Origin: Oculina patagonica
Taxonomy: Eukaryota
Direction: 5' to 3'
NCBI RefSeq assembly: GCF_052425735.1
Contig: NC_135770.1
Span: forward strand, 26,846,001-26,910,000
DNA: 64,000 bases
Below, piece after piece: positions 2,821 through 32,100 of the stretch; positions within the stretch are counted from its first letter, which is position 1, and the number at the start of each line of letters is the position of its first letter. The position numbers and the translations under genes are program-made. The notes beneath the pieces are model-generated. The model ran no database searches, was not told where the DNA came from, and was given only the letters and a program-made list of their open reading frames with translations.

Positions 2821-3513
2821 ATTATCAACCAAGTAAAAGCAAATGAAGTTGAATTATGGGTATTGTATACACTCTACAGATCCCATTCTTGGCGACGAAT
2901 TAACATAATTATTATTTAACTCCAAAAAAGCTTAGCTTTCTTGGTTTGCAAATTTTGTTGAAGAACTATTATTTATGCTCTTCAACGTAACTGGTTAGTT
3001 TACAAGAAACGTCACCATCCTTTGCTCTCAAGTAACGATTTGATTGCTTAATTCTGTTCCATGTGACTCGGTTCTAGTAATCACACTGTGAACTTATGCA
3101 AAAAAACTAAATAATCAGATGCGACTTATTCGATTGGGCGACTGGGCTTGCTAGTTTTAATATTATGGACCGTTTCCTGCATAACAATGCATAAACAAAA
3201 CTCTCATCTTCGTTTTGCAGCGTGCCTGCGGGCACTTATTACATGGGGTATTACCGATGAACATCGATCCAAGAATGGTGCACTTCCGCTTGTTCGAATG
3301 TAATTCACTCGAAAACTGAAAAATTTGTTTCCAGCTTGGGGTGGAAATGAAGGTAACGGAAACTAAAAGAATCCAGTACAACAAGGAAGTGACATTCAAC
3401 CCCATCGCTACCAGACGTTTTCCTGTCTCGCTCTCCTCAACGTCCGCGACGGTTTTCTTTGCATAAGTAGACCAGGTAAAATAAAATCAAGCACGATGAC
3501 TAATTCAACTCAC

Positions 3514-3636
3514 CATTACAAGATTTGCCATCACCGGTGTACCCCGCATTACAAGCGCAAGTAAAAGAAGCCTCAGTATTAGTGCAGGTCGCCGACAAAT
3601 CACAGTCGTGAGTATTGGTAGTGCATTCATCTATGT
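3514..3636 (-). CDS. Gene A exon: calcium-binding EGF ([12 protein letters not shown]...GYTGDGKSC)
   Basis: 123 bp, phase 1-1, AG acceptor and GTGAGT donor. Confidence 0.9.
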
Positions 3637-6600: not shown

Positions 6601-9600
6601 AACGGTAATTCAAGACAACACTGGATGCTGATTTAAAAGATTTTTTTGTTTCACGGATCAGGATCGTGGGAATTAAATTTGGCCAGCATTAGCATATAAG
6701 AAAAATATTTAATTTCGGATGGAACTAGTCAACCATGAAATGTCACGCAAGGTGTTTTCCTACCATCTTGTTTGTCAGTCGCAACATTGTTCGACGCAGG
6801 TAAAGGGGATAAGGGGGGGGCGGCGCATTTTTTGTTCCCCTGACATGGCTCCCCTAAAGTGCTCACGAGACCAGCGCAGTTGTAAGCTCTAAGAGCTCTT
6901 GTTGGTAATGAAAACGTTACCGATGTTCCTGTTTGGAATGTGTTCTTTTTTCTGCATTATTACAATTGCGAGAAAACAATGAAACAGCCGGCTATAAAGT
7001 TTAACTTTTTCCGAGAATCAAATTCCGCCACACAGTTTGTCCAAACAAACAGCCGTCGCGCTTACTGCTTTCACAGAGATTGAAATCGATTCTCGCAAAC
7101 TTTCATGACAAATGACATTCATTTGTACAGCATGTGAAACTACTCAAATTTTAAATCGAAACGTCAACGCTAGCTAACGCTCTATTCAACATATAAAGTA
7201 AATAGCTTGAAAATGAAATTTTACTGTTTTTTTATACTCAACTGAAATTTTATTGTGTGAAGTGAAAAAAATGTTGTCATCGTCGCTTTCTCTGGCACGT
7301 TATGCACTTTAGAATGTCTTCCTTTGCTGGCTTTACTTTATTTTCCAAATGGTACTACCAAAACTCCGGTTGATGCCGTAGAGGAAATTGTTTGAAATTG
7401 TCACGAGCGAACTCCGCCACGCACTTTTACGTCTGGAGACATAACCGGCCTCTTTGATTAATGCCGATGATATTTACTTTCCAACTTGTGCTGTCACAAC
7501 TACTCCAGCTCAAAAGAGATGCAATCGAAGTTTGTTGAAAATCCTGCGCCATGCCAAATGTTTTCGTGGCGAACGAAGAAGTTGAAATTTCTTTGTTCTG
7601 TACTCGACATTTCATTGGCTGAAGGAAAAAATGCTGAAATTTATTGTTTCCGTTCTTTTTTGTGATTGGTTAACTTTGTCTGGGTGACCCCGGTTACAGT
7701 AGCCGCACTGTAAAATTTATTTCCACAACTGAATGTTATAAAATTATAAACTCGCCCGCTTTTAAAAGCGTAAATGAATAATAAATGCCTTTCTTACCGT
7801 GTAAAATCTTCATTTCATACTTCCATATAGTCTTCTTTTCTTCTCGGAAATCGCTTCGAATATTAAATTATCCCAGTCCTTCTTCACGGACAATTTAAAA
7901 AGCGATAAAGCGGCGGCCATTCACCAACCGCACGCTGTTTCGCTACTCACTTTCTACAACAGAATAGATAGTGAGTAGCGTAGCCAATCAGAGAACAGCC
8001 TGATTCGTGATAGAACGCTAGTAGATTTATACTAAACTCGATAGAAACACGCGACACGTTTTTTCATATAACAAACTAAGGAATGACGTCAGAACGCTTT
8101 TTCTTACCGTTAACACCGCAGTAACGTTGAGAGCATCCACTCGGCGTTTGCAATTTATAAACGTAGTACCCACTGCAGTTGCGTATTTCAACTGGATATG
8201 ACTCTTCACAGCAGAGTGACAACCAATGCATACAAACAGTTGTCGATACCAAGCCGTAAGCAACGTTGGGATGATCGCCATTAATCCAAGCAGTCTTGTG
8301 AGTGTTGCAACTTTTCTTTGGAATGCAATAGGTAGCCATCATTGTCCCAGCAGCCCCCGTGAAGCGGTACCACTGATTACTGATAATTGTATCATCGCAA
8401 AAAATAGCACCACTGGGGTCAACATAGTTCCAAAATCTGTTGGCCTCGTTCAGTTCGTTATATATGGAAGAGAAGCATTCAGGTGGAATTCCTGTATCTG
8501 TTTAGCAAAGCTGCGTTTTAATTTTTTTATCAACTGTAAAAAGCTACCTACATTTTAACATGCCCTATTTATATGTAGTTTAAGAGACTGCGCCAATATC
8601 AAGCAGGAAGGGGAATTAATAAAAGGGAGAGCGGTGATGTTGGGATGGCGAGGGGATACTATATAGAATCGGTGAAAGTCAGTGTGCAAATTTATCTTTG
8701 GCTAGCCTGAATTTCGGACGTCTCTCTATAGTCGCCAGCTCCCGAGAAGAGTCTCTTCTCGGGAGCTGGCCACTAGAAAGAGACGTCTGAAACTCTTTGG
8801 CAAGAATTGAAAGACGTATATAATATTTTTCATAATTTGAAAAAAAAACTGGTAATTAAACAATATTTTCAATTTCATGTCTCGCTCCCTTCAACGTCCG
8901 CGACGGTTTTTTTGCATCAGTAGACCAAGGTAAAATGTCGAGTAAAATAAAATCAAGCACGAGAACTAATGCAACTCACCGCTACACGATTTGCCGTCAC
9001 CGGTGTACCCCGCATTACAAGCACAAGTAAAAGAACCATCACTATTGGTGCAAGTCGCATACAAATGACAGTCATGAGTATTGGTCGTGCATTCATCAAT
9101 ATCTGTCAAAAATGATAACAACAAAATACATATGGTGTGGCGTAAATATAGGACACGGAAAACTGGAACTGGTCGCATTCCAAAAGGGTTGCCCAGTTTT
9201 GCATTGGGATCAAAATAGATAACATTCCTTTCTAAATTCATTCAAATTATTTGCTCGCTATATATTTGTTCATAAAAGGATTCGTTTCTCTAAAGATGCT
9301 TTGCTTCATCCTTGTCACAACTGCCTACTTAGTTTCTATTTAATACAAGGTACACTTAGAGAAATTCGTGCAAATGACACCTTGCACTAATGTAATTATG
9401 CGCCATGAGCGATGCATATTTGACTGACCTGCACACGAGCTACCGGTATAGCCTGCTGGACATGAACATACACTGGACCCATTTGTTGCCAGGCAAGCAT
9501 CATTCTCATCTGCAAGCAAAACAATTCCCTTGCATATTGGTTTGATAGCGTAGCCTCAAAATAGTATCGTCACTTCCAAGGAGAAGTGTCTGGTCTAGCC

Positions 9601-12600
9601 TATATACAATAAAGTCACTTACAAGGAGGAGTGCGATAAGTCAAATCACTATCAAACTAGGAACTAAATAAAGAATTAATAGAATAAAAAACAAGACAAA
9701 ATAGCGTTGAATAGGAAGGTAGTACAGAAACACAGAAACGATAAAAAGATTGTGGTTAGAACAGAAGGAAGAAAAGAAGGATGGAAGGAAGGAAGAATAA
9801 CTAAACAGTGCTTTGAAAAGTATAAACAAGCTCAAATAACAATGCAAGGACTAACGACAGAACGTTTTTCTTACCGTTGACACCGCAGTAGCGTGCAAAA
9901 CACTCACTAAGCTTTTGCAATTTATAAACGTAATATCCGCTGCAGTTGCGTATGTCAACAGGGTACGTCCTGTCACAGCAGAGTGAAAACCAATGCGTGC
10001 ACACTGTTGTGGACACCAAGGCGTAAGCAACATTAGGATGTTCACCATTAATCCAGGCAGTCCTATGAGTGTTGCAGCTTGATTGTGGAATGCAATAGGT
10101 AGCCATCATTGTTCCAGCAGCCCCCGTGAAGCGGTACCACTGATTACTGGCAATTGTGTCATTATCGCAAAAAGCACGACCATCGGGGTCAACATAGTTC
10201 CAATATCTGTTGGCCTCGTTCAGTTCGTTATACACGGAAGAGTAGCATTCAGGTGGAATGCCTGTACCTGTTTAGCAAAGCTGTGTTTTAAGTTTTGATC
10301 TATTTTAATAAATGTGCTGCATATTTGCATGCCCTATTAATATGTTGTATTTTAAGAGACTGTGCCATATTGAGGTGGAAGGGGAGTTGATAAACCTGAG
10401 AACACTGTGATGTTGGTAGAAAAGGAAGGGTATTGACACAATGTAAAATCGAAGAAGGTCAACGTGTATTTTACCCTATGGCAGTTTGGTCGGGGTATAT
10501 CTAATTTTCATAATTTGACAACCTCAATAGTCATTCAACAATAAGCCTGTATCAATTATATTATAAATTTGTTTAGCTCCATCTGTTTAACATCAATCGA
10601 CTGGTGTTTCTCCGATGACACAAATTTCAAACGAGCTCTCTTGTTTCTGTTTTCCATGGGCACATTCCTCCGTATCTTAGCCTTCCATCGTACATTCTTC
10701 TTGACTTTTATTCAAATATTATAGGACTAAAAATACGGCTTGTATTCCCACAGGATTTCCTAATCCTTCCAAGTTTATTTTACTTCCACAACTTAACGGT
10801 AACATCAAATAACAATGTCAGGATTATCATATCACTGGAAGCGGTTAACCTTTCCCATAACAATAACATTTTTTAGATAAACTAACAATACAAGTCACGC
10901 ACTGGTGCATAACTTTCCATCGCCGGTGTATCCCACATTACAAGCACAAGTAAAAGAACCATCAGTATTGGTGCAAGTCGCTGACAAATCACAGTCGTGA
11001 GAATTGGCAGTGCATTCGTCAGTATCTGACAAAAGTTATTAAAATGATTAGTTGCTAGGGAAGGACTAAATAGATGCTATTGTAAAAACGGAGCGGGCAT
11101 TAGTATAGTTTACTTTTGAGCTCAGAAGATGCAAATGTGAGCAAAAAAACTATCCAGTTATTTTAGACGGAAACACGGCATTGTTGTTAATAATACCTCA
11201 AATGGTTACTATGAGCACATAATTTAGCAAATCAAGGTTGCGATACCAACGTTATAGTTATTCTTTCTTTTCTCCTTTCTTCCTTCCTTTCATAAAAGAG
11301 GAACAAATGTACTGGTGTTCGTATAGTGCCGGTGATCGTCTGGGTGAGAGTAGTTCTGAAAAGAACTGTTGTTGGTGACTGATGTTTCGACAACCTGGGC
11401 GGAAGTCATCTTCAGAGTCCTTTTTAGAGTCAAATTCTGAAGATGACTTCCGCTTAGGTTGTCGAAAAGTCAGTCACCAACAACAGTTTTTTTCAGAACT
11501 ACTCTCGTCCTGACGATCACACTATACGAACTACTGATACTATTTCCTATGTTAGGAACAAATGTACTACATACTGACTACATAAACAGGAACGTTATGA
11601 CTTTTCTGTCTTAATTTGAATTTTCATTTCTTCGATTTTATGATAGCTTCAACACGGTATATGTATACCCTTTTTTCCATTGCAATGTTTTTTTTTTCTG
11701 CTTGGTCAGTCAATGCTCGACTCACCGCTACACGATATGCCGTCACCGGTGTATCCCACATTACATGTACAAGTAAAAGAACCATCAGTATTGGTGCAAG
11801 TCGCCGATGAATCACAGTCATGAGTATTGGTGGCGCATTCGTCGATATCTGTCAATAGCATGATTTAAAAATAACTGAAATTACCAGTAACAAAGTTGAC
11901 CTATATGATACTCAGAATGCGGTTGGGATTTAATTGTTCATTATGTTTTATTAAGGCAAATTAAGGCTGTTCTCATTGCAACATTTTTTCAATGTCCGCT
12001 GTTCCTCTTATTTTCATGTGAAGCTTACTAAGGTTTCTCCCTGAGCGGCATTTGCAAAAATAATACTCGGCAACGTGATTTCTGAAAACATAAATTTTGT
12101 AATTTGATTACATTGAAATAAATAATTATTAATTTGGAAGGGAGGCTTATTTGTAAGAAACATTTCTAGGGTGTAATTACATAGTAATATGAACTCACCA
12201 CTGCATGGAGGTCCGCTATAGCCAGCCTGGCATGAACAATCAGAGGAACCATCAGCGCTGGCCCGGCAGGCATCATTTTCCCCTTTAAGTAATGATAAAA
12301 CGCTTATTTTTTTTAGGTAAATATGGGTATACACAGTTGTATATGCGATGTTAAAGCGTGCGTTTTGATAAGAACCATGAAACGTTGGCTATTGTTGCTC
12401 TTACTATTTCTTGACGTCCCTTTGAGTCTCAACATAATAAACGAAAAGATGTCTAGGTGGAAATGCAATTCCATTTTTCAGTTGAATTATGTCTTAATAT
12501 TTAAGTGAAGACAGCTGAAAATTTAATTATGAAAACTAATAGGTCCTTTGAAATGTTCGTTTCAGTTTAGATGCACCCCGTGGTGATAAGCAATGATGTT

Positions 12601-12693
12601 CAGGAGAGCCAGTCAGTCGGCCCTTTCGAGAGTCTGTCCGTCCGCCCGTCCGTTACGCTGTTAGTCAATCGATCAGTGACATCAGTCGATCAG

Positions 12694-12765
<72 letters not shown>

Positions 12766-15106
12766 CCATTCAATTAGTCAGTCAGTTAGTCGTTAGGGTA
12801 CAAATGCGAAATGTTGCGCCACACAGCACTGAAACTGAAAGCTGGAAAGTAAAGAAATAACTGTAATGTAATTTAAAATGCTGAAAAATAACCCACGATT
12901 TCCTTCTAAGCGTTCTTGGGGTATATTCCAGCACCTAAAAGTTAAGTGGAGTTAATTCTCTACTTCCCATCTTCTAGTTTCAGTGCTGTGTGGCGCAATA
13001 TTGCAATTTCTGCGTTGTCACGAATTACCGCCTTAATAGTACACTCAACAAAATTACTGGATTCTGATTGGACGAGAGTACCTATTACCTTAATCTCTTT
13101 TGTTTTCGCGGGATTTAAATTTCGCGAAAATTTTTTCGGCTCATTTCGCTAGTCCTTAGTTTCGCAATCGGGGTGAAAACTTGCGTTTGCAGGGAATTTA
13201 GTCTCGAAATTGATTTCTGATTTCTAAAGATTTCTAGAGCTTCTTGCTTTTTCTTATTGAAAGGTGGGATGGTTCATTTTAAAGTTAGTGATGAAATCTA
13301 TCGTCGATCGTCCCCTTTCATTCAGGGAGGTCTGGAAATTTCTGTTGGATAATATGTGAAATGGACGATACACCGAGGAACAGGACAATAATGGAAAGAT
13401 ACAAGACACTCGTAACTAACAAGGAGCTGGGACAGGATGGTCAATTTGCCGACTGTACAGAGGCGGATGTATTGGAGGAACTGTGCGAAAATGATTATTG
13501 ACACTGATTAACATCACATGTTGATAGATAATAGCTCTGTGTAACAACTTGTGTTAAAAATTGTTTAGGACCCGTGAAAACAGAGTTACATGATTTTTCT
13601 GTCCATTCAGTCGCGAAGGTACTTTTCTTTCCGAAGTTGCTCTCTCGAAGACTTCCGAAGTTGATCCAAAGACTAATTTAGATTTTCGAAGTTGAACCGA
13701 AGATTTCCGAAGATATCCGAAGAGCTTGCAAAGACTTCCGAAGATTTCCGAAGTTGACCTGAAGACTTCCGATAACTTCCGAAATTAATCCAGAGACTTT
13801 TGGAGTTGAAATAAAGTCTTTCGATAAAAAACTCGATGGTTGATAAAGGCTCGCGCAATTTTAAGAACTTTCAAAACACCACTCATACCTTTAAATCACG
13901 ACAACTACTCGAGGTCGGGCAATTTCCTACCCAAAAATTACCCACGATGTGCTCCTGTCTGACTAGCTCAGTCGGTAGAGCAACTGTGATCTAATTCGGA
14001 GGTTGTGGGTTCGAATCCCACATCGTGAGGTGTTTGTGGTCCCAGATTTCCTTTCTAGAGCTGACACACAGAAGAAAAACCTGGATTAATTTTCAGCACT
14101 TAAAATTTCATTAGAGTAACCTCTCTTCTTTCCAGGAGTCAGTTAGCCATTCCGTCGAGGAGGATACGATAATCAGCAAGAATAGTAATACTTATTTGTT
14201 CTAGAATATACTTACCATTAACACCACAGTAGCGGTAACGCATGTCTGGCGGTCGTTTTAGCTTATAAACATAGTACCCGCTGCAGTTCCGTATTTCAAC
14301 GGGATATGACGTTTGACAGCAGCTCGAATGAGAATGCATACACACGGTTCTTGACACCAACTCGTAAGCTGCAGTGGGATGATCTCCGTCACTGATCCAG
14401 GCAGTACCTATCGTGTTGCAACTATATTTCGGAATGCAATATGTTGGCAACATTGTTCCAGCACCCCCAGTGAAGCGGTACCACTGGCCACTGATAATGG
14501 TATCGTAATCCTTATAAAGATAGATAATACCATCATCATAGCTCCAATATCTGTTTGCCTCACTGAGTTCGTTGTACACGGACGGGCTGCATTCAGCTGG
14601 TATAGGAACTGTTAAGAAAAACAAAACAAAACTTGCACTTTGCCAAATCGCACTTTGCCAAATCGCTTCCATCTGAGTAAACAGACGTCCCTGTTCCTGT
14701 GCTCAAGTCCTTCAACGTTAGAGAGTTGTGAGATTCGACCAAAACAAATCATTGGCGTACCGCTTTTAAGAGATCTGCGAGTGGTTTTGATTGTTTTTTT
14801 TTCACCTTGTTTTGAATGGACCACTTTACTGATATGGCGACCATTAAATTGAATTCCACTATTTCAAATAGCTTTCATGCCGGGGGGGGGGGGGGGGACA
14901 TATAGATGTCCATTTGCCCCCTGAGCATCCCATGATCTCTTTTGAAACAATGGAAATCTTTATATTGGCTAACTGCAATAGAAAATAATGATTTAGGATG
15001 CAATGTTTTACCGTTTTCCGTACTTTTTGTTGTGTTCTTTTTTTGTTGTAAAGTACTCCAAAACTAGCTGTAGGCAAGTACTCTCACGTGAAAAAGTATT
15101 ATTTAC

Positions 15107-15142
<36 letters not shown>

Positions 15143-18100
15143 TTTACTTTGGTCTTCTACATGTTAAGACAGAAATCCTTGACACCTGACCTATTCCCAC
15201 AACGAAAATGATGACAGTCTTTCATTTATTTTTTTTATATCAGTTTAGCTCGATGAATTCCATTTAATCTTGTGCTGTTTTGACAACCCATACTCATTTT
15301 AGGTTTTGTGGCAAAGTTTTTCTCCCGCCTTCCATTATCGGTTTTAGACATTAAGGCAAGTTTGTTTATCACAGCGACAGCTAACAGTAACATGGTCAAA
15401 AAAGTCTTGTAAAATACATTTTGAAAAAGCTATCACCATAACGTTGCAGTGTTGTTATATGTTGATAAAGTATATAGAGATGAAGGTACTTACACGTGCA
15501 TATGCGCAAATCACACTGCGTTATGTCAGGTGGTCTGTAAACATAAAACTCGCCACAATTTCGAATTGATATGTAATAGTGTCTAAAATAACAAATATCT
15601 CCACTATGATGGAAACAGAGTTGACGCTCGACAACACCATCGCCCACAGCAGGATGGCCACCTCGGATCCAACCCGGTGCATTTGCGCCGCAGTGGTAAT
15701 CTGGTGGCGCGTATTCAGGAACGACGGCTCCACCACTTCCTGTAAAACGAATCCAACTTGTACCAGTGAACGTAGTGCTGTCACAGCCGCCGCTTGTAGC
15801 ATCGTAAACAGAACGGGATGGGTCTGTTATGTTAGTGTAGTTGATGCATTCTGTAATGAAGAAAAAAATGGCTCAGTTCTTATTTTTATTATTGAAAAGT
15901 GCCTTTTATTTTTTACGCTTTCATCAGCGCAGTTTAGAACTTAAAGTTGGGTTCTGTGAGATATTGGAATCGATAAGGCGTGTAAAAAGGACAAGGAAAT
16001 AATATTCCCGTATGGGTTTTCTTCGTTTAGCTTTGAAAAACCTCCAAAAGTCCCAAGTTTAAAGGTCACATTGTGATCCTTTATTGACATGTCGATATTG
16101 CAATGAAAATACCACGCAACAACTTAATTTCAATTACCCAAGTATTTTAACTTAATAGAAAAATTATGAACATAAAATACTTGTAACTTCGCCTTTTAAT
16201 GAAACGCCAACGTTGCTCAATCGTTTTAGTTGCGTTTTCACTGACCTCAATCAACTTAGCGCTAGCGGACCTTTCAGAAAACAGAAGTTCACTTTATCGG
16301 GTTCAACCGATCACGTCTGTGGGTTGTACTCGTTAGATTTCGATCTTTTTTATCGTTTCGTTTTTCAATGCAGGTTGATTGTCGACGAAATTATAATTGG
16401 TGGCAAAGAAAGAAAGAAAAGGTATCGTTGTTGGATTTTATACTTCACCCTTTTGAAAGTGCAGTTACATTCGACTAGAAGACGATACCATAAGACAGTT
16501 ATGAAAAACTGGACGGAAGTGAAAAGTGATTTTGTTTTATTCAGTTGCAAGGCTCTAATTGAGGAGAGTGATATTCATATAGGCCCATAATACAATATGG
16601 GGTCCGGACAATATGTGCCCCTTATACACAAAAGATATAAAAACAACTACCGGTATGAATTAAACCCTTCTTACCGTCTACACTTAGAACTTGTCCAAGA
16701 TGACACAAAAAAGTTGTCAGCAAAGAAATAAAAACCTGTGGCGAAAAAATTTATAACATAAGCTCCTTTCATTGAACTTTAATCATTTTATGATATTTAA
16801 TGAAATTGGCTCAGGAATTCTTTTTGCTTAACAAAATATTTGGTGATAAACGTATCTTTGATAAGGGGATGTTTTTTTGTCAGGTTTGAGAAAAACACTG
16901 CTGCATATTGACATATTTGTGACGTTCCCTTCGTCCGAATCAATAAGAGTTAGAGATTAGGAGTTTAGTTATAAAATGATATTTACAAAACTACAATGCA
17001 TAAATTCGCAATGTTAGTGTTCTGCTTTGGAACGGATCATACAAGACACAGCTGGGAGTGACGTTTTCCACAGTAGATTTATTTTCGCTTAACTTAATTT
17101 CACTTTAACTTTTCAGTGAAAGAAAAACGAGATATAGTGTACGCTGCGTTCGGTTGAAAGCCATTGTGTAGATTTTTAAAGTTGGGCAAAGACTGTTTTG
17201 GAAACAATTCAAGTCAGAAGGCAGTCTTTGATGTTTAGCATACCACACCACAATTTCGACATACTGTATCATTGTTTTATTTTTCACCGGGTTTCCACGT
17301 AACACAGGTCACCATAGTACCAGCGATATCCTTTTCTATAATTTTTTCGAAATCTAATACGTACAATTTTGTATCCATTTTTTATTTCAATAATTTGGAG
17401 CATCGTACCAACTTTAGATGAAATTTCACAACAATTTGTTAGGCAGTTTTTGAAAAAAAAATCTTTCAGGAAATGAAAACCGCAATTACCGTAATGATCG
17501 TCAGACTGTTGCCACACGACAAAGTTGTAGTTTTGCTTAAAATCTTTGATGGGTTCCGTTGAGCTGTTTGACTACTATGCCACTCTGATAACAAGTTACC
17601 GCGTATGAAAAATAGTTTTCATTGACAAGTTCCCGGGTATAAAAAAGTTTTAAGTTTTTTTTCGATTGACGATGAACAGGTTTTTTTCATCCACTTCGAC
17701 TTGAATTCTACATCCCTTTCGAAGAGCAGAAGATTGATTGCCACTGACAGCAGACAAAATCGGTTTCTACGATCATTGACTTAACTTCTTTCTCAGTAAT
17801 TTTTCGGAAAGGGTTAAAGTTTTTAAAGAGTATCAGGTAATAAGTTTGAGATTAATATAAATGACTTTTAGCACGACTTTTCTGACATAATACAATTTTC
17901 TCTACTTTGTTTAAGAAGAAATGAAATTTGCTCAGGCAAAATGTAGTCACCTGTTCGGCAACCAAGAATGACACATAACAATCTTATCACGTTCCGAAGG
18001 GCAACGTAAATTTCCTTTGCATATAAAGATGGGAAGAAGTTATTATTTTCTATGAACCAGTTAGACATTAAACAGTGGACGAACAGTATAAATGGCAATT

Positions 18101-18673
18101 TAAATAACACTTTCCTTTTGGAAAAAAATACACGATGTGAATCAGCAGTTTAGTTTTTACAATTTTGATAATGTCTCGAATTATGATTTCAAATAACTTT
18201 TCTCAGTTTACAAATCTATTATTTCATCACTTTTTAGCACTCCGTCAGAGCAAACAGAAGTTATTAAAATATTAAACTAAAGCAATCAGTATTGATTTTA
18301 AAAACATTATAAATTCAGCAAAGCGGCATTGAGGTTTGGCTAAATCTACCCGCTTTTTGGTATGTTTTAGGTATGTGTTAGGGTGGAAGAAGTGTTAAGA
18401 CATTGTTGAACATTTAAAATCGATTAAGTTTAGTACATTTATCAGTTTCCAACAGAACAACCTCAAAAAGTGAGAAGCTTTAAGGGTCGTTTATCTTACT
18501 TAACTTCACTTTAAAGTAAAAGGAAACAACTATTTAAATTTTCGGTTAAAGATGGAGAAATGGATTTCTTCAAATGTCCTATCTGGCAATTCCCAAAGAA
18601 ATTTAATTAAAATAACGAATATACTTACTATTGATTGAAGAGCCACAAATCTCCGAACTTGTTCAAGACACAT
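3514..18673 (-). CDS. Multi-exon gene A (3'-partial): secreted or cell-surface protein with signal peptide, 4x uromodulin/GP2-type D10C, 3x mini-EGF and 5x cbEGF; uromodulin/OIT3/GP2-like
   Basis: Exons in transcript order: 18673-18629, 16735-16675, 15850-15494, 14608-14216, 12282-12199, 11848-11726, 11025-10903, 10267-9875, 9509-9429, 9102-8980, 8497-8108, 4321-4241, 3914-3792, 3636-3514; all GT-AG with compatible phases (0, then 1-1); last exon ends at a donor with no stop. Confidence 0.85.
3792..3914 (-). CDS. Gene A exon: calcium-binding EGF
   Basis: 123 bp, phase 1-1; inside ORF 3748..3960. Confidence 0.9.
4241..4321 (-). CDS. Gene A exon: 4-Cys mini-EGF ([26 protein letters not shown])
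   Basis: 81 bp, phase 1-1, CAG acceptor and GTAAGT donor. Confidence 0.8.
5318..7716. mobile_element. Non-autonomous foldback-type DNA element with roughly 650-700 bp terminal inverted repeats
   Basis: 5318-~6010 is the reverse complement, with a few indels, of ~7085-7716 (e.g. GCGGCTACTGTAACCGGGGTCACCCAGACAAAG); no credible ORF inside. Confidence 0.85.
8108..8497 (-). CDS. Gene A exon: D8C/D10C domain 4
   Basis: 390 bp, phase 1-1; [22 protein letters not shown] motifs. Confidence 0.9.
8980..9102 (-). CDS. Gene A exon: calcium-binding EGF
   Basis: 123 bp, phase 1-1; inside ORF 8966..9241. Confidence 0.9.
9429..9509 (-). CDS. Gene A exon: 4-Cys mini-EGF ([26 protein letters not shown])
   Basis: 81 bp, phase 1-1, GTCAGT donor. 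Confidence 0.8.
9875..10267 (-). CDS. Gene A exon: D8C/D10C domain 3
   Basis: 393 bp, phase 1-1, ten Cys; ORF 9801..10235. Confidence 0.9.
10903..11025 (-). CDS. Gene A exon: EGF ([12 protein letters not shown]...[10 protein letters not shown])
   Basis: 123 bp, phase 1-1, GTGCGT donor. Confidence 0.85.
11314..11553. mobile_element. Palindromic Penelope-type pLTR fragment with degenerate hammerhead motifs
   Basis: Inverted arms ~11335-11415 and ~11437-11518 containing CTGAAGA...GAAA; flanked by the direct repeat AGGAACAAATGTACT at 11299-11313 and 11554-11568. Confidence 0.7.
11726..11848 (-). CDS. Gene A exon: calcium-binding EGF ([12 protein letters not shown]...)
   Basis: 123 bp, phase 1-1, GTGAGT donor. 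Confidence 0.88.
12199..12282 (-). CDS. Gene A exon: 4-Cys mini-EGF ([27 protein letters not shown])
   Basis: 84 bp, phase 1-1; inside ORF 12014..12334. Confidence 0.8.
12695..12765 (+). repeat. (TCAA)n microsatellite
   Basis: Pure tetranucleotide run. Confidence 0.95.
13951..14030 (+). mobile_element. tRNA-derived SINE head or tRNA pseudogene
   Basis: TAGCTCAGTCGGTAGAGC A-box and GGTTCGAATCCC B-box, but no intact acceptor stem. Confidence 0.6.
14216..14608 (-). CDS. Gene A exon: D8C/D10C domain 2 (8 Cys)
   Basis: 393 bp, phase 1-1; ORF 14139..14672. Confidence 0.9.
15105..15141 (+). repeat. (TTTA)n microsatellite
   Basis: Tetranucleotide run. Confidence 0.9.
15494..15850 (-). CDS. Gene A exon: D8C/D10C domain 1 (ECINYTNIT...CDLRICT; 8 Cys)
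   Basis: 357 bp, phase 1-1; ORF 15396..15647 covers its 3' part. Confidence 0.88.
16675..16735 (-). CDS. Gene A exon 2: hydrophobic part of the signal peptide ([20 protein letters not shown])
   Basis: 61 bp, phase 0-1, CAG acceptor and GTAAGA donor; joins exon 1 and the first D10C exon in frame. Confidence 0.7.
18629..18673 (-). CDS. Gene A first coding exon ([15 protein letters not shown])
   Basis: ATG plus 14 codons, then GTAAGT in phase 0; mirrors the first exon of gene B. Confidence 0.6.
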
Positions 18674-20059
18674 GACTGCTTCAAATTATTTTACCTTCTC
18701 TTGATGCATTATAAACATCTCGCACAGGCAGATGAATTTTTATCAATATTCATAAAAATATTCCGCTTGGGGTCCTTTGATAAAGTTCTAGAATAAGTTT
18801 CAAAAAGCACTCCCTCGCTGTATTCAAGGCAACTTTAATTAACAATATCAAAATATCGTAGTTTGACTTCTCCTGTTGTACAAATCAAACTGTATTGAAA
18901 GCAAATGATGTTTTATGGCATTTCATTGTTATCGAAACTTGTTTATATATTTGGAACTAAACTTTTCTTTCGGACTCAAGGAACTCTCGTTCAATATTAA
19001 TATCTCTTTCGGAAGAAATTAAATTGTTAATTAGATTTTGCTCGATTGGTGAGACATAAATTGACTGTTGACAGAACATACTCTAAATGCCTTGATTGGC
19101 TTTAAAAAAAAATGGCAACATTTCTTCTCAAAGCTTCTTTTCACTGGATTTTCTAAATGCTTTATTATTTTTCACATACTGTTTTAGAACCTGCAAAATC
19201 CATGCTTGTAAGAATTCTTTAAAATACACGTCAAAAATTAATTTAATTTTACTTATTCTCATTAGTAGATGATTCACGTGAGGTCTAGTTTCAACATCGG
19301 ATTCATTCAGGGCACTGCAGGACAGCTGGGTACAGTTAAACTGTTACTGGAAAACAAAAAGCAAAGCAGATTTTTAGCACAGAAACGTTCTCATGGATAT
19401 TAATAATAAAACATATTTTCAAAAGTTTGATACAAATTCCTTAGCTAAAGTTGTTTTCATTTTCATTTTTTTTAGGAAAAAATTTTGGCCAAAACATCAG
19501 CTACGCTTGTTAATTTCGAAATTTTAACCAAACATCACATTAAATCTAAAAAGCACTATCATTTTTTAAAAGTATTAACAAAGACTGGAGATTCATTGAT
19601 ACTGATAGTCAGAATAGGCGACCAAGTTTTTATAGTGTACAATGTAAAGTAGAATTATTGTTATTTCCTTTTAACAGTACTGTTTTGTCTCTTTGCTTTA
19701 CTGGCCACCTGGTATAGTTTCTGAACATGTACAGTCAAGATTACTAATAGATTCAATAACATTGAGAAATGTCATAAGGGACGCGGTATTCGGACACTTC
19801 ACAAAGTTCAGCCAAGGTCTTTTAAAAACAATGGCTTTTAGCAAGGCGAACGAATTAAGGGCTTCCTCCCGACAACCTGTTTTTAAACAATGCTTTGAGC
19901 AGTCTCTTCTTTAATTAAAAATAACTCGAGTTTCATTCACACAGCACAGTCGGAAAAGTTCTACAAATTTAAATGACGCACAAACGAAATTTTGTTAGTG
20001 CTTCGTCCACCGGAATTAATCAAAACTGATCGAAGATATCAAAATTATGTTGAACAAAG
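18674..20059. promoter_or_regulatory. Divergent intergenic region (putative bidirectional promoter) between genes A and B
   Basis: Lies between two oppositely oriented start exons; TSS positions not determined. Confidence 0.5.
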
Positions 20060-20074
20060 ATGTTATTCGAAAAC

Positions 20075-20116
20075 ATGCGGAAACATTCTCTATTTGAAGC
20101 GCATCTTCCGGTCCTT
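20075..20116 (+). CDS. Gene B first coding exon ([14 protein letters not shown]; alternative in-frame ATG at 20060)
   Basis: ATG...CTT then GTAAGT, phase 0. Confidence 0.6.
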
Positions 20117-23100
20117 GTAAGTATTCTGCATTTTCTTGGCTTTTTATTTCTTGTTTTTGTGTTCACGCATTGCATTTATATGCTTAGATTTCAAAACTGT
20201 ATTAAACTTTGCACATTAATGTAAATAGCAGCAGCACTGTAGCTTGGATCATATCCATTCATTCAATTATTTCTCTGTTAGAAAATTAACACGAAAATAA
20301 TCGTACCGTTTAAGACCAGAATTTCATTTTGACATGTTTTTATGTTGAGTATTTTCAATAGGCAGTATGCGGTAAGAGCGCGCGGTTAGCAAAATATGCT
20401 TTACACCAGATCAGTATAACAACGTTCTTTTACAATACAAACACCGGCAAAATTGGCATTAAAATCGGTGAAGTCGTACGTTACTAAGTGATGAATATGA
20501 ATGAAATACATTTTGTTAAAACTCTTACGCACTTTATCAACAGCTAAAAATTAGTTTACCAAAAGAATTCACAGTAGAATTGAGAAAACTTGTTTATTTA
20601 TCTATTTAATTTTTTTTTTTTTTCAAATTGGAGTTCATTTTGAACATAATCACAGTTTTATAGTATCTGAATACTGTCCTGAATTGGAAAGTTAATGTTT
20701 CGTTCGTCAATTTTTCCTCAAGATGTAAAGTATTTTAAAACTTAGTATGATATCAATCAAGAACAGTAAGCAACTATCATGTCACAAATTGATTAAAATT
20801 GAGGGGAAGGGGGAAGGGAGGGTGAGGGGATGAACATCAAACGAAACTCAAAGTTGTCCTGAATAAGAAGATAGCCTGTGTGTATAAGTCCCCTTTCCGT
20901 CAAAATCCCAATTTATTTTAACAAGAGGGATAATTATAATTAAATATAACTGTACAACAAAAACAACAATTTTGAAGAGTTGTGTCTTATGCTACCGTTT
21001 CGCGATCGAGCGCTTTCCTTCGGTGTCATGTGAACTTCGACTTTTATTCCTTTTGTGCCGCCTTAGCAATTAGTTTTTTTGGGAAACATGTTCTATTTAT
21101 GCTAAATAATCAAAGATTTGGCTGTGGGCACCTTAATCGTTGAAAATAATTTTTCTTTGGTGATCACGGTTCGTTCGTCCTTCTTCATGGTAAAAACAAT
21201 CCAATTTTTTTTTCCAGTTAGCGGAAACGCTCAGAACCAGGGAAAGCGTGTGTTTAAAAGAGGTTTTCCCTTAGAAGAGGTAAAAATGCAGTAGTTTTGT
21301 CCGGTCACAACCACAGAGGAGTGACCGCTAAAGACAGGAGTACCCCTATTATTTTCGAAGTCGAAATGAAGAAAGATTAAGGTAACGAGGTAACTTGTTT
21401 TGTTTGCTTTTCCTACGTAGGTTGTACAGCTTGTTTTGCTCATCTCCTCGTCGACCTTAGCTCAACAAGGTATACATCAAAACAATCACTTATATTCATA
21501 AACTATACTGTATTTATGTCCAATTCCGCTACAACGAATGTAAAATTGACAAAAAAACCATGCGAAACCGGCTGTTACTCCAGCAAGAGCAACTGTTAAA
21601 CATTACACCTATCATAGGAATAAAATAAACGATCCACTTTAATCTATCTATCTATCAATTTTCTAACCTTAATTGAAATGCGTATTGTTGATAATTTATT
21701 GAATAATAAACAGTTATCCTGCTCGATCTTGTGAAATATCTTCTGATTCTAGCGAACTTGGCCTACAGCCTCGTCGGCTAAATAAATCAGGCGTTATTCC
21801 GCGCGATTTCGCAGGATAATTGTTAATTATTTTATGACACAACAATTTAGAGTGTGATAAAAGTCTAAACTCCCTCTCTCTTTGCAATTTAGAATGCAGC
21901 GAATACATCAACATAACTGACAACAGTAGATCAGTTAGTGCGACGGGCTTAAGACTTTGTGACTCTGGCGCAGTGTGGACCACCAATAACGATTGGATCC
22001 GCTTTCCTATAAGTGGTGAAACATGGATGCCGGAATATTGCCCACCAACGCACGCCTGTAATACGGATGCGCCAGGTTGGTTAAGTGGCAGTCATCCTGC
22101 GGTGGAGGATGGGATTGTTCAGCGTCGAGTTTGTTTTCACTGGAGTGGTGATTGTTGCATGTGGTCTATAGATATACTAGTTCGAAACTGCAGAAAGTTC
22201 TTTGTGTATCAGCCATTATTTCAAGTACCAACCTGTTGGCTACGTCTTTGCGTTTCACATGGTGAGTTACTTCACAGTCAGACACTTTCAGTTCAAATCG
22301 CAAAATATTTCTTCCTCTTTTTTTATATAACTTTCTTTTAATGTTAGCTCCGAGAATTTGTTGATAACTCCCCATAGCTGATGGTTATCTTCATTCTCAT
22401 CACCCTTCGGCTTAACAACATAGTGATATTGTTAGGAGAAATTTGAAGTTGATCAATCTTTGGAACTGGACAGTTGAAATCAATTTTCGATCAGGTATTA
22501 ATTGATTGCATTTTCAAGGTCAATGTGAATGGTGCAGAAGGCAATCATTTCATACTTCTCTGATGAAATGAATACTCCTTACCTCATGACCACAATAATT
22601 AATGTCACCGTTACTCAAAAGTCTTATGCTTCTTCCCGCTGGGGACTCCTTCCCGCTGGGGACTCCTTCCCCCAGGACTCCTTGCGCTGCCGGCCTAAAT
22701 CCTTAACCTTTTATAGACTATTTTTGACAGAAAATGGGAATCCTTTCATATTCTTTCCGTAGAAAATGGTACCCCTTTTATCTACATACAGTAGATATCG
22801 TCTCTTTTGCAGGGTTTATTTTAGTAACAACTTAAAATACTTAGATGTATCAGCCGTTAGCAGGAGCCGTTAGTTGCGCCTCTTTAACATATTATAACTA
22901 AATTCATATTATAACTGTTCGTCAGAAGTACACAGTTCTTGGACACAGCGTCGTCGTTAATGTCAGACGACAATGAACCCTGTTTACTTGATAAGATTGC
23001 AGTTGTCTGCTGCGCCTTAACAAACTGTTGCAAGTCAGTAGTTGCATCAGATTATGAGTCCTCAATTCAAGATATTTGTCAGCTGTACATTCCAGGAACA

Positions 23101-26100: not shown

Positions 26101-29100
26101 TTTATTTCACAACATTTATTTGCTAGGCAAAATCATTATTAGAAATAGAACACTGTGTGGTAAAAACTATTACGGGCTCTAAATCATGTAATTTTGGCGG
26201 GTTTTTTTCACGACCCGTCAACGACAGTTCCTGCCTCCTGCGAAAACTCGCTAATTCTGAGCTTGTATACCAGGTACGCATCGTTCGAATATCCATGACG
26301 TGGTGCAATTGTATTGGATTGGCTTATGCATTACCTGAACAACTTACCACTGAAGGGTATCGAAATATTACGCTTTACTTGCAATTTTACGCGACTTCTT
26401 AATTTCGCAAAAGAGAACTATTTGCAGGAACATAGACCTTAGACCAATAGACCTTTTTCGCTCGGGCTTTTTGTTGCCTCATTACAGACCATGTGATGAT
26501 ACTCTTGAGAATTCTTGCTTTCAAATTTTCAAATAGTCGCGTGTATATGAATGAATAAATTTTATGTCGATAAAAGAAAAATTTTCTAGAGAACATCACG
26601 TGGTCTGTAATGGGAAAACAACCCGCCCAAGCGGATAAGGTGTTTTATCTCCAATTGCAAAATCGTTTGCAACACGAAAGGTCCATTTTTCTAAACACGA
26701 GGTAGCTACAGCCAAGATCAGAAGATGAGGCTGCGCAAACTTCGAAAAGTCAGCCACGAAAAAAGAACATGTCTGTACAAGTGAGGCTAAAGTCTAATAC
26801 TAAGCGCTCTGGCAGTATTTAAGTTTGTAACATCGGTGTATTCAGTCAGTTGCTTTACGTAATAAAACACAAAACCTATCTTTACAGATGTGAACGAGTG
26901 TGAAAATGGACTTGACAGTTGTGACGTCATCTCTACTTACTGCGTCAACACCATTGGGTCGTACTATTGTCAATGTCGTGAAACGGGGTTCACAATGAAT
27001 GGACAAATCTGCGAAGGTATTCAAAAGTATTTTTTCACGTTTTATTTTAAAACATTATTATCGTTACAGCCGCCCGTTTAGATCATAGATACATGGCGTA
27101 CGCGGCAGTGAATAGCCCAATTTCGTTATATTAAAATTCAGCCTAAAACAGTAGGGGTTTATTCCCCAGAGCCTCGTAGTTATGTCTATTGTTTTAGGGT
27201 GAATTTTAAAATATCAAAATTGGGTTATTGTTGTTATTTTAAGGTGAACTCTTTTCTAGGCTACCTTATTCTTACGGGTAAGCTTTTCATTTGCCCGAAC
27301 CCAAGCTCCTCAGGTCGTTTTTTCAGTGCGTTGATAGAATTAACGGCCACATGTTGCAACCCAAAACTTTTTATAAGTTAGCCTAAAAGTACGGCGACTA
27401 GAAAATTAGTACGAAGGACTTATTGCAAATGACAAAAAGGAAAAAACACTAGCACAACACACCTTGAAAACGGCTCACAGCGTGGCCGAATGCTTTAACT
27501 GGATGCGTTATCTGGAAGCCCTAAGTCAAATCCTCCACCATGCTACTAGCTGGATTTGCTGTTGATAATCCCAAGTTTTACACTTCGGCCGCGTTTTTTA
27601 AATAGCTAACTGAGCTGTGTCCCACAATATATACCTGAAAAACACTATATACAGTGCTTCGCTCCACGCTTTTAACTTCTAACCCACACACAATCCCAAT
27701 TATCCCGTTTTGTTTTTCTCTTTAGACGTCGATGAGTGTTTGACGGGCGACCATCAATGTCCATCCCATTCTGCCGACTGTTTCAACAATGAAGGCTCGT
27801 ACAGCTGTGAGTGTAAGCAGGGATACACTGGAGATGGAAGAAACTGTTCAGGTAATTAATAATTTGTTGAACTCAGTTATCGCAAGTACTTTTTATCACT
27901 AGTATAAATTGCACATAGTTTTCCGACAACTCTCAAAAACGAGCTGGCATTTTTCTCAAAAGTGGACACAATTTCACTTGAGCAGAATATTGATTGCCGC
28001 AAAATCACTGTCAGACTCTAGTGCGCATGACTCACCTACAGCGCAAGAGAACGTAATTTGAGGGATTATGCATCAAGTTTTCTTTGCCCCGCGAACGTCA
28101 AAACTTTTGCCCTTTTTAAGATTGCCGTTTATACGTCAAAGTGAGTAGTTTCGTATTCTTATTTTCCTGATGGATTTTTTCAATAATTAGAGAAGACGCT
28201 GACAGAAACAGGAGCTTTCTGACGTTTGTCGTTTGCAATAAATGTTAATCTCTCCACTGTCTTTCCGGACAGATGGTTGCTAACAATGGTTATCAGTAAG
28301 GGTACGGTTATCACTGGGGATTTTGAGATACCTTGCCTAGTTCCTAGGCCTTCCATATTCGCTCCCGTCGATCCGTTTAGGATCACGTGGTACGAGCGAA
28401 AAAACGACTCCAGCCGTTCTCCCCTGATACGTTACCGCAACGAGTAGTTACATTACACCATACTGTAAAAGCCTGGGGAAAAAAGCCATATGAATTAGGC
28501 AATGAGATACCTAAACCGGCCATTTGTGACAAGGCTGAGTTACAGACATATGAAATCATTTGTATTTGTTTGTTTGAAAGAATTAACCCTTCCTGTGTGT
28601 TCAATCCAATATGCAAATATCAACTTGATGTCAGAAACACCCAGTTAAATACTTTCTTTAAAAAAAGTAAACCCGCCCCGTTCAGTACAAAATGAGTTGA
28701 TAACAGAGGGTTGTGTAACATGAGCGAACTGAAATTTAATCTTCTTTGGCATATTAAAAAAGGTAAAGAAAATTGAAGAATAATTCATCAGATCGTAGAC
28801 CTTTCGCGGCCACTTTGCGTAATGACAAAAAAAATGAATTTGGAAGAGAATCATTTTTCTTCCTTCCCCAAAACGTTCAGCAAAAATATGCTACCAAGAT
28901 TCGAATTGAAACAGAGACTTTATAATTTGTGTGTGCAATATTTTATTGCACATGGTAAATGCCATTTCGGTTTTATTTTCGAGTGTTCCGATAAAAGTTT
29001 TCCTCGTTCGCAATAGAACATTTTTTCGGTGCTTTGCCTTGAAGCTCAACAACAAAAAGCGGTAACGGTCAAGGATTTGAGTACAACATGTAATTTAAGT

Positions 29101-32100
29101 ACAAAATAAAGGACAAGCAAAATTTGCCAGCATGTTTCACAAAGTCGTGAGAAACTTTCTCCGCGGTACAATGCGAACTGTTCTTCATAAGCGCGATCAC
29201 TAAATAATTACTCAAACCGAACGCGTGGAAACGATCTAAGGAAAAATTATGGTAGAAATAAATTGAAATAAATGCTATCATATAATTTATTACATAACCT
29301 GTTTTTTTTTTAACATTGGAAATGTCAAATTACAAATACTCTTCTGCTTTCTTCTCGACTCTGTTACGAGTGTAACATTATTTACAAATGGCCTTGCCTA
29401 CGCAGTACACCGACTTAAGCAGTGTTTACTTAATCCGAAAGCATGTATTATCTTAAATGATCTAAAACTGTAAACAGTTTTCAGTAAGTGTCAGTAACAG
29501 CCATCACTTAATATTCAGGATGTCTCATGAGTTCGCATTTAGCGTTGATTTAGATCACATCTATGGCGTTACTGGGAGAGATATTTCCTTGTCCCTCTTC
29601 TTGTTGGTTGATGTCTCGTTCCTGTCCAGTTTGAACAATGCCCACAGCGTTTGGTGATCCAAAAACACGCATCTCGATCTGTTCCGCTTGTGTGTAACTT
29701 TTTCTTAACAAAATTTCAAAGAACGCTACACGAAATCGCCTTATTCTTGCAGCGTAAATTATTGGATTAATTAACGAATTGATAACTGGGAGAAAACCTC
29801 CAACGAAAAAAATTATATAAGCAACATTCAATGAGACTCTAGAAACAATTATTCGAACGACAAATATTGGTGAATAACATAACAGCACTGCGACAACGAT
29901 AAACGTTGTCAATTTTAAGGCCTTCTTTTCTTTTAAGAATTTTTGTCTGGCCTCTGCGGACACTTGCTGGGAGAGAATTTCTTTTTCATGCCGACGAGCT
30001 TCTCTGTAAAGTACAAACTGTCCTATGATAATGATGGCTAGACACAGAACCCAAGCTGCGTTGTTTACGAAAAGAAAGACATCATTATCTATGACGATAG
30101 GAATTATAGTTATTAATAAGATTGTGACCCATGCAAGAACGGAGGCGAGCAGAATGCGGCCTTCGGTGACAATGGTTGTGTACTTGTACGGGTGATAGAG
30201 AGCTAAATATCGTTCCCCGCTCATTAAAACCAAGTGAATGAGCGATGATCCGTATAACAACCTCGACACATTTCTTACTGTCGCCTGAAGTATACATGAT
30301 TCACTTGACGAGTCGCCTTGAAGGATGAATATTACTAGTGGTATCTGCAAAGGTTGAACAATCAGCCCCACCATCGTGTCTGTAGCCGCTAGACACGCCA
30401 CAACGACGTTGGACATCGTTCTCAAGCGCGGTTTGGTTTTCACGGCGATCATCACCAACAGATTGAGTACAATTGTGAATGGAAACGTCACACTGTTGAT
30501 TACGGCGGACGAAACCAAGGTAGCATAAACTTCAGGAGTTATATGGTCAAGTTTTCCTTTGAGGAAAACGTAAATTTCACATTCGGCAGGTATCGCCGGG
30601 GAAGAAACTTCGCTTGAATTCATGATTTCGCTTTGTAGATCTTGGTCTTGATACAATAATGTTGATTTTTCCGTGCTCACAAACAGTGGTTCTTCTTTTA
30701 TAAGCGTTTCTTTATACTTTCTTTTTTATGTTTTTTCCGCTCTCGCATTTGCATTTTATCTATGTTATGTTTTAAATGGGGATAAGCAGTCGCTGCTTTT
30801 TAGCGAAGCTAAGACGCACGTTTCTCTTATTTAAAAGGTTTTCAGTACTTCCTTTTATTGTTCACTCCTCGACTTCCAATAAAGCGTCCTCGGAAAACAG
30901 ACCTAATTAGACATCTTGGCAAATCCATCATGAAAACACGATGTGGGTTGATTGAAAGGAACGCAAATGCAACGGATGTTAATACACAATGACCTGGTTA
31001 CGAAAAATATCGAGCCATTGAAGGCCAATTATTGTAAAAGACCCAAACTTCGAATCCAAACCAGTTATTTACAATAGACTTTTCAAAGCGCATTACCCTT
31101 TAACTGATTGGGAATATTATTTGCGACACAAATTTAAACCATTATTAAATACAATTTCAGTTTACAAACATGGAGAAAATTGAGGCAGTACAAGGTAGTA
31201 GTAAAGGTAGTATCGGTGTACACAGAGACTGAGTCAGTCTTCACTTGCAATTAACAACTGCAGCAAATCTGGCCACTCAAGAATTGGCCAAGAAAACCAC
31301 AGCACGCGCTGCAATGCTACTACAAGACTAATCCACGGCGCAAAAAAGCATAATTTTCACTCGAACCAATGCAGTGATTTGGCACATTAATAAAATAAAA
31401 AAGAAAATAAATAATAATTCATCGAGTCGAAGATAAATAAACAAGATATTTTCAGTTTACCTTTATAAATTATCATTTTTCTGCCGGTCGAAATAACAAA
31501 AACAATCTCCTCGAAACGTTCAACAGAAACATGCTGCAAGATTCAAGTGAAAATTGGCAAGTTGTAATTTGTTTGTCCAATATTTTATTGTACAGGATAA
31601 GTGCAATATTTTTTTTACTTTGAAGACACGAATTTAGCATCAGGTTTTCACCGTTCGCAATCATACATTTTTTCGGTTCTTTGCCTTGAATCTCAACAAA
31701 ATGTGGTGAAGGGGAAAGTTTAGGATTTAAGTGCAAATATGTTTTAAAAAATGAAGCACAAGACAAATTTGTCAGTATGCCTTACAAAGTCAAGAAAAAC
31801 TTTTTCCAGGTTTTTCTCCTGGGGCGAAATACGAACTTGTTCTTCATTCTTGCCATCACTAATAAGCAATCACTTAAATCGAACGGAAGAGAATGATCAC
31901 AGGGTAAAACATTGCAAAGAAAATTGAAAAATGGAATAAATTCAGTCATATATTTTATTACATCACCTGTTCTTTTTTTAACAATACTCTTCTACTTTCT
32001 TTTCTACTCTGTTAAGAGTGATATGGCCCGCTTAGATGATCTAAAATTGTAAACAGTTTTCAGTTAGTGTCAGTTACAGCCATCACTAAATATCCAGGAT

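Follow-up and report, generated by a model that had tools for sequence, protein, structure and literature searches.

The stretch of DNA analysed here, referred to as the window throughout, comprises 64,000 nucleotides (nt) of the stony coral Oculina patagonica (C13:26846001-26910000; AT-rich, gap-free metazoan DNA) and represents, with a probability of about 0.8, the junction of two divergent, full-length paralogues of a coral polycystin-1-like receptor-channel gene. Gene A (minus strand) and gene B (plus strand) are arranged head to head, and the outermost domain of both is a D10C module, which is known from the vertebrate proteins uromodulin and GP2. Public annotation places only small “GP2-like” and “uromodulin-like” proteins at this locus, whereas the sequence points to two full polycystin-1-like receptor-channel genes, so that the picture of the locus needs to be corrected. 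An earlier note on this DNA had seen in the same layout a possible decoy/sensor pair that a shared promoter could co-express; instead, the locus appears to be an ordinary diverged gene pair in which each gene has a promoter of its own.

Results

Two colinear polycystin-1-like genes

For the comparison of both genes, 30 kb were added on each side of the window, and the minus-strand open pieces left of position 18700 were compared with the plus-strand pieces right of position 20000. This revealed one colinear series of about 20 blocks with 29–66% identity (42–66% for the main coding blocks), running from the D10C exons via EGF exons, two REJ exons and three middle exons to exons of 429, 58 and 514 amino acids (aa). 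Identities between A and B amount to 42 and 54% for the REJ exons, 62% for the 429-aa PLAT exon, 71% for the 58-aa exon and 47% for the 514-aa channel exon. On corresponding exons of both genes, Pfam reported REJ (PF02010; two exons per gene, 74–93 bits, profile positions 5–412 of 452), PLAT (PF01477; 64 bits in gene A and 78 bits in gene B) as well as Polycystin_dom and PKD_channel (PF20519 and PF08016, about 97–106 bits). A partial GPS match of 21 bits, with the cut-off being 22.5, was found on the gene A exon upstream of PLAT. As judged from these predicted domains, both genes belong to the polycystin-1 family, save for a clear GPS match, and no ZP module was seen among the exons examined.

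The predicted extent of gene A begins at position 18673 and reaches about 23.4 kb beyond the left edge of the window; gene B would start at 20075 and end at about 72.1 kb. Following its first three exons, the remaining in-window ectodomain of gene A (3512-14608, minus strand; tblastn and Pfam) is built from D10C exons (A2 at about 14208-14608, A3 at 9861-10259 and A4 at 8103-8498) interleaved with EGF exons, while the putative exons for further EGF repeats, REJ, the weak GPS match, PLAT, the polycystin domain and the PKD channel lie beyond window position 1, at a distance of about 4.5 to 23.4 kb. The remaining in-window part of gene B (22262-64000, plus strand) features EGF exons up to 27850 and again at 48300-48431 and 50593-50757, discoidin at 52299-52790 and REJ at 55362-56225 and 58812-59426; PLAT and PKD channel exons follow beyond the window. 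Since the colinearity spans the whole genes, gene A would itself be a polycystin-1-like receptor gene and not a secreted, multivalent D10C partner of a gene B receptor. The completion of gene A, which had been suggested to decide whether it is secreted, ZP-type or REJ-type, thus speaks for a REJ-type gene whose polycystin-1-like exons continue beyond the window, and the decoy/sensor pair fails in its original form, as gene A is a receptor gene, too.

Matches of 77–96% (protein level) downstream of both genes were also considered as conserved last exons, but were rejected as a small non-coding repeat with stops. This small dispersed repeat consists of two mirrored, stop-bearing segments of about 140 and 180 nt (92% identical), situated on the minus strand about 26.9–28.2 kb ahead of the window and on the plus strand about 9.8–10.4 kb after its end (73832-74436 in extended coordinates).

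The first domains of both genes belong to sister lineages

The first D10C domains of gene A (A1) and gene B (B1) matched the Pfam family D8C_UMOD (PF23283) with 65.7 bits (E 4.5e-18) and 64.6 bits (E 1e-17), respectively, at a cut-off of 27, and the solved GP2 D10C structure 7P6R with E-values of 4.4e-20 (A1) and 9.5e-23 (B1); 6TQK and 6ZS5 (GP2/uromodulin) were also matched. Both domains share 48% identity, and A1 is 33–38% identical to the other D10C domains of gene A. By itself, however, the value of 48% is no more than the background of the family: at least 318 D8C/D10C candidates exist in the genome, the majority being single phase-1 exons (about 350 nt) arranged in long tandem arrays (e.g., C1 26.48–26.67 Mb and C2 9.34–9.36 Mb), and two non-self matches of B1 score above A1.

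Nevertheless, in a maximum-likelihood tree of 67 Oculina D10C domains, A1 and B1 form a pair (support 96/96), with A1 on a long branch, which vanishes once sequences of other corals are added. In the tree including other corals, an A lineage (seven rows, including Stylophora; 100/99) and a B lineage (six rows; 89/78) make up one clade (98/94). A1 and B1 consequently belong to sister lineages, a relationship the earlier note had proposed to test, and since each has orthologues in other corals, the duplication is older than the split between Oculina and the pocilloporids. The sequence features which had been cited for the likeness of the first domains are of unequal value in this context: WIRF and PEY.PP, together with an N-terminal NITD..RSV, are shared derived features of the A1/B1 clade, whereas the block APGW...HP.V..G.V.R..CFH is found family-wide and the exon start AG|AATGY is the D10C norm, being present in 33 of 55 other D10C exons.

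Ten cysteines are present in B1 and its closest orthologue, and eight in A1 as well as in all five full-length A-lineage orthologues (L042, L043, L044, L051 and L056; here and below, L numbers denote loci of other corals taken from ENA assemblies), with the Cys of “EYC” (to EYA or similar) and one Cys of “CC” (to xC) being replaced. This double loss probably removes one disulfide. Among the protein searches, that with B1 against representative proteins was dominated by multi-D10C proteins and was of use for some short fragments of high identity, the search with the gene A model yielded overwhelmingly EGF proteins, the search with the gene B head (residues 1–160) returned only two short Logan fragments, and the search with the Stylophora head matched only itself.

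Leader exons and transcription of gene A

Gene A starts with a 45-nt exon 1 (18629-18673, minus strand; ATG at 18673, phase 0 end, donor GTAAGT), followed by the 61-nt exon 2 (16675-16735; phase 0 to 1, between AG and GTAAGA), which encodes a hydrophobic signal-peptide core, and the 357-nt exon 3 (15494-15850) with A1. In gene B, exon 1 (20075-20116, plus strand; donor GTAAGT) spans 42 nt from a conserved ATG at 20075, or 57 nt from the ATG at 20060 used by RefSeq; exon 2 (21421-21469; 49 nt, phase 0 to 1) again encodes a signal-peptide core, is contained in the NCBI models and is conserved at the coral locus L074 (80% nt identity, donor kept), and exon 3 (21893-22261; 369 nt) carries B1, the D10C exons of both genes being in phase 1. 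The mirrored succession of a short ATG exon, a signal-peptide exon and a D10C exon, first pointed out in the earlier note, is hence real in both genes and in line with the RNA contig described below (gene A) and two NCBI annotations, although two small coordinate corrections were needed. The correspondence between exons 1 and 2 of both genes lies in position, size and phase; beyond the hydrophobic leader character, no sequence similarity between A and B was found for these exons.

The joined translation of gene A exons 1–3 equals exactly the first 154 residues of KAL9954069.1. For gene B, KAL9954070.1 (94 aa) and XP_078352367.1 (308 aa, “uromodulin-like”) both use exons 1–3 and differ only in the start codon. 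At L074, the ATG at 20075 is conserved, and the counterpart of the ATG at 20060 is directly followed by a stop (TAA), which argues that the RefSeq N-terminus of gene B is probably five residues too long.

RNA data were taken from one public run (X1; 4% of the sampled words) in the form of Logan contigs, which were compared with window positions 15495-21494. A 173-nt contig aligned to 18678-18627, 16733-16675 and 15850-15789, the skipped parts featuring GT..AG on the minus strand; one of the joints can be shifted by 2 nt, giving exactly the predicted borders (18678-18629, 16735-16675 and 15850-15789). Exons 1–3 of gene A are therefore transcribed and spliced as predicted, and its proposed first exons are in use. 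The contig starts 5 nt upstream of the gene A ATG, which fits a very short 5′ untranslated region (UTR). Copies of exon 1 are intact upstream of A-type paralogues and 76% identical (nt) in another coral, and exon 2 retains intact splice sites in five other A-type copies and 80% nt identity at the coral locus L043. Within intron 2 of gene A, a 32-nt piece (16263-16294) showed 90–95% identity to contigs of run X1 at a depth of 206, representing either a short repeat or an unrelated abundant RNA.

Gene A as part of a tandem array

A-type copies are lined up in a direct tandem array on C13 (26.67, 26.76, 26.79 and 26.83 Mb), in which gene A is the last member and the one closest to gene B. Same-strand copies of its PLAT exon show 96% (26.79 Mb), 96% (26.76 Mb) and 88% (26.67 Mb) identity, and 98% was found on an unplaced contig; gene B ranks next with 63%, followed by the next paralogue with 46–48%. 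Conversely, the PLAT exon of gene B is 62–63% identical to the A-type copies and only 46–48% to its next paralogue in the genome. The nearest copies, A′ and A″, have kept homologues of exon 1, exon 2 (ATG and splice sites intact) and one A2-type D10C exon, and are devoid of the A1 exon. Moreover, a unit of A-type 5′ flank plus exon 1 is tandemly repeated about four times before A′ (C13:26809769-26816030) and two to three times before A″ (26774842-26778032), each with intact ATG and splice donor; these units could serve as alternative first exons or reflect promoter amplification. The polycystin-1-like family as a whole is very large, with at least 83 matches to the PLAT-transmembrane exon at E ≤ 1e-20, about half of which lie on C13 (0.7–1.0, 4.2, 19.8 and 23.8–27.3 Mb) on both strands.

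The spacer consists of two separate flanks

The start codons of both genes are separated by 1386 bp (1401 bp to the conserved gene B ATG), with no other gene in between. The spacer has a GC content of 32% and 29 observed versus 35 expected CpG, i.e., no CpG island. In a genome-wide DNA search, homologues of the spacer were found only upstream of A-type copies: 17866-19218, 19315-19551 and 19576-19877 are 73–85% identical to the flanks of A′ and A″ (with several tandem repeats upstream of A′), and none of the A-type tandem copies bearing this homology has a divergent partner gene. On the other side, 19610-20304 is 74% identical over 716 nt to the flank and exon 1 of the B-like gene at L074, where conservation also extends to exon 2 and to the beginning of the D10C exon. 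As each half is conserved elsewhere without the partner gene, the spacer is composed of an A-type 5′ flank (18674-19551, minus strand) and a B-type 5′ flank including the 5′UTR (19610-20074, plus strand), which abut near 19551-19610.

Each flank contains a TATA-like box. The A-type box TTTATAAT (about 18710-18716) lies 37–42 nt upstream of the gene A ATG and is conserved in the A-type copies, and the B-type element TTTAATTAAAAATAAC (19910-19925) is embedded in a near-perfectly conserved block (19897-19955). With both boxes (about 18710 and 19910) being about 1.2 kb apart, the transcription start sites are predicted to lie about 1.2–1.3 kb apart. When A′ originated, the segment 19576-19877, which ends 20 nt short of the conserved core block of gene B, was duplicated together with the A flank; the A/B junction is consequently real and not recent. 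No remnant of an inverted repeat linking the 5′ regions of both genes turned up in a repeat search of 15000-22800, which yielded only short, AT-rich pairs attributable to chance.

Related loci in other corals

In the B-like gene at L074 (ENA ERZ25067872), a B-like D10C exon (67%) precedes EGF exons, among which one shares 95% identity with the exon at window position 48300, and then discoidin and REJ, so that the order of gene B recurs here within 9 kb. Its upstream neighbour, likewise a B-like polycystin gene, is oriented identically and has its end at a distance of about 4.5 kb. The first 5425 positions of L074 show the B lineage tandemly duplicated, opposite to Oculina, where A is amplified and B single. 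The closest orthologue of A1 (L043/L075) has retained the A-type flank and the D10C exon as well as exons 1 and 2 (76 and 80%, respectively), and neither a B-like D10C nor a B-type flank occurs within 6.9 kb beyond exon 1 of L075. Likewise, no B-like sequence was found within 19 kb of the A-like D10C exon at L057. The A/B junction was thus not found at the orthologous 5′ ends in two other corals (L074, B-type; L075, A-type), with one copy having been examined in each. The finding of no B-like D10C within 10 kb upstream at L042, L043, L044, L051 and L056 was downgraded as a junction test, as the first intron at L043 already measures 7.4 kb.

Discussion

Taken together, we propose that one ancestral whole-gene duplication, predating the Oculina/pocilloporid split, would have given rise to genes A and B. 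Both genes would encode a signal peptide, an N-terminal uromodulin/GP2-type D10C, EGF repeats, REJ, PLAT, the polycystin domain and the PKD channel region. Following the duplication, the ectodomains would have been remodelled: gene A may have acquired three more D10C domains and additional EGF repeats, lacks discoidin and would have lost one cysteine pair from its first D10C, whereas gene B would have retained the 10-cysteine D10C and discoidin and gained a 20 kb intron with five nested G protein-coupled receptor (GPCR) genes. In a later step, gene A would have been multiplied as direct tandem copies. The 1.39 kb spacer would then represent A-type and B-type 5′ flanks back to back, each presumably used independently via its own conserved TATA-like core promoter. 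Accordingly, the part of the earlier idea of an old inverted duplication that has been borne out is that of old paralogues in inverted orientation, as reflected by the trees; its restriction to the 5′ ends has not, since the colinearity spans whole genes.

In Oculina, we infer that each head is joined to its REJ-channel body. The strongest case for such continuity is L074, but also the Stylophora model “Uromodulin” (1233 aa) arranges an A1-like D10C, discoidin, D10C, EGF, D10C and REJ in one model, and in the A-type copies of Oculina, about 10 kb accommodate the leader exons, a single D10C exon and REJ. Several points weigh against this and against the two-gene reading as a whole. All NCBI models end before REJ, with 165 aa (XP_078352366.1, gene A) and 308 aa (gene B) in RefSeq and 837 and 94 aa in GenBank, and the RefSeq model of gene B has its own spliced terminal exon (28581-28648). 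The introns which need to be spanned contain insertions. In gene A, open reading frames of a Pao/BEL-type long terminal repeat retrotransposon (protease and integrase; Pfam Peptidase_A17, rve, Integrase_H2C2 and DUF5641) lie antisense in an intron (1-2312, plus strand, continuing before the window start). In gene B, the 20 kb intron between the EGF exons at 27850 and 48300 contains five intronless rhodopsin-family GPCR genes (29553-46446; young, about 390 aa each, 78–94% identical, three of them on the minus strand and the other two on the plus strand), while the same intron is 1.5 kb long and empty at L074. Furthermore, the RNA support from run X1 is limited to gene A exons 1–3, and no contig of this run covers gene B exons 1–2 within the compared stretch, outside of which gene B exon 3 is located. 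The predicted distance between the start sites is read from TATA-like boxes only, enhancers in the spacer could still be shared by both genes, and the comparison with other corals builds on one A-type or B-type copy per species.

With respect to regulation, it appears improbable that the inverted duplication left both genes with a single, shared bidirectional promoter in the spacer, from which they would be co-expressed. The close distance of the two ATGs with no intervening gene would agree with it, as would the fact that A-type and B-type flanks were already contiguous when A′ was made. Each half of the spacer is, however, conserved in contexts lacking the partner gene, the spacer is AT-rich without a CpG island, and the two conserved TATA-like boxes place the starts further apart than is usual for bidirectional promoters, for which divergent start sites less than about 1 kb apart are commonly required. 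The presence of an X1 contig on the 5′ exons of gene A and its absence on those of gene B points in the same direction, but is a weak argument, as contigs cannot measure expression level. A stronger competitor, if somewhat short of even odds, concerns the layout itself, which could stem from a later inversion or rearrangement in a mixed-orientation polycystin cluster rather than from the original duplication. Polycystin-like exons occur on both strands of chromosome 13, no B-like sequence was detected in the upstream stretches of L075 (the closest A orthologue) and around L057, and the neighbour of the B-like gene at L074 is a tandem B-like gene. On the other hand, A and B are adjacent and mutually nearest among their non-recent relatives, as would result most simply from a local inverted duplication, and with a single copy per foreign coral, lineage-specific tandem arrays could hide a junction copy. 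We regard the head-to-head layout as what local duplication ordinarily brings about in a gene cluster of very large size and fast turnover; the layout gives no special reason for expecting co-regulation.

Regarding the gene bodies, paralogy could in principle be restricted to the 5′ modules (leader plus D10C exons), e.g., by exon shuffling onto unrelated bodies, as D10C exons are phase 1-1 cassettes in hundreds of copies; this is hardly credible in the face of the colinear blocks from the D10C exon through the channel exon and of PLAT exons that are mutually nearest outside the A array. A revised form of the decoy/sensor idea, in which one or both loci mainly make short secreted D10C proteins (165 aa, or 308 aa with D10C and EGF) uncoupled by insertions from the REJ-channel exons, is likewise unlikely. 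It would account for the early ends of XP_078352366.1 and XP_078352367.1 and the spliced terminal exon of the latter, and two of the nested GPCR genes do lie in sense orientation within the long intron of gene B. Nevertheless, the downstream exons of both genes are all still open and colinear, a D10C head is followed by REJ at a short distance in several cases (the B-lineage gene at L074, the Stylophora model and copies A′ and A″ of Oculina), and the retrotransposon in gene A is inserted antisense, the usual orientation of tolerated intronic insertions. A further reading, namely that the two loci are self-decoying, with alternative 3′ ends releasing soluble D10C heads from the very promoters that also drive the full-length receptor-channels and enhancers in the abutting flanks coupling the genes, is a speculative long shot. 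If this were true, ligands would be buffered by a system that makes use of the bacterial-adhesin-binding domain known from uromodulin and GP2.

For the two full-length receptor-channel genes favoured here, the main implication lies in the D10C head. The combination with a polycystin-1-like body is represented in at least two old lineages across stony corals, which makes the D10C-headed receptor a candidate surface sensor worth testing, and it seems to be undescribed in the searchable literature: searches for uromodulin/D8C together with coral or polycystin retrieved no description of a D10C-headed polycystin and, beyond a coral REJ-domain skeletal protein, nothing relevant. In automatic annotation, one such D10C-headed polycystin is labelled “Uromodulin”.

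Comparison with known systems

The closest known relatives are members of the polycystin-1 family (PKD1, PKD1L1-3 and PKDREJ as well as suREJ of the sea urchin), with which both genes share REJ, PLAT, the polycystin domain and the PKD channel in canonical order. A variable, module-built ectodomain is likewise common to this family and to genes A and B. What sets the coral genes apart from the family is their head, a D10C of the uromodulin/GP2 type, with EGF repeats behind it and, in the case of gene B, also discoidin; moreover, the GPS match of gene A stays below the Pfam cut-off. Coral REJ proteins have so far been known with WSC and PKD-repeat ectodomains, including a REJ-domain protein of the coral skeletal matrix (PMC4890752).

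With the D10C of uromodulin and GP2 (7P6R, 6TQK and 6ZS5), homology extends across the whole domain and B1 keeps all ten cysteines, whereas A1 and its orthologues have only eight. In contrast to the vertebrate proteins, where the domain is part of a ZP-module filament protein, the coral domain would sit on a multi-pass receptor-channel body. The protein annotated as “Uromodulin [Stylophora pistillata]” (LSMT01001355.1) is a member of the A lineage, its N-terminal D10C being 56–59% identical to A1, its inner D10C 56–57% to the A2-A4 type and its REJ region 50–58% to gene A; unlike gene A, it features a discoidin domain directly after the first D10C. No B-like D10C is present within 10 kb upstream of this gene, the model of which is truncated where the scaffold ends.

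Classical bidirectional promoters, finally, are formed by head-to-head genes with a short intergenic region common to both. Genes A and B resemble them in orientation, but differ in the predicted distance between their starts, in having one TATA-like box for each gene and in the lack of a CpG island, and their pairing was not found in the two other corals (one copy each), so that the locus is better compared with two neighbouring genes, each appearing to bring along a promoter of its own.

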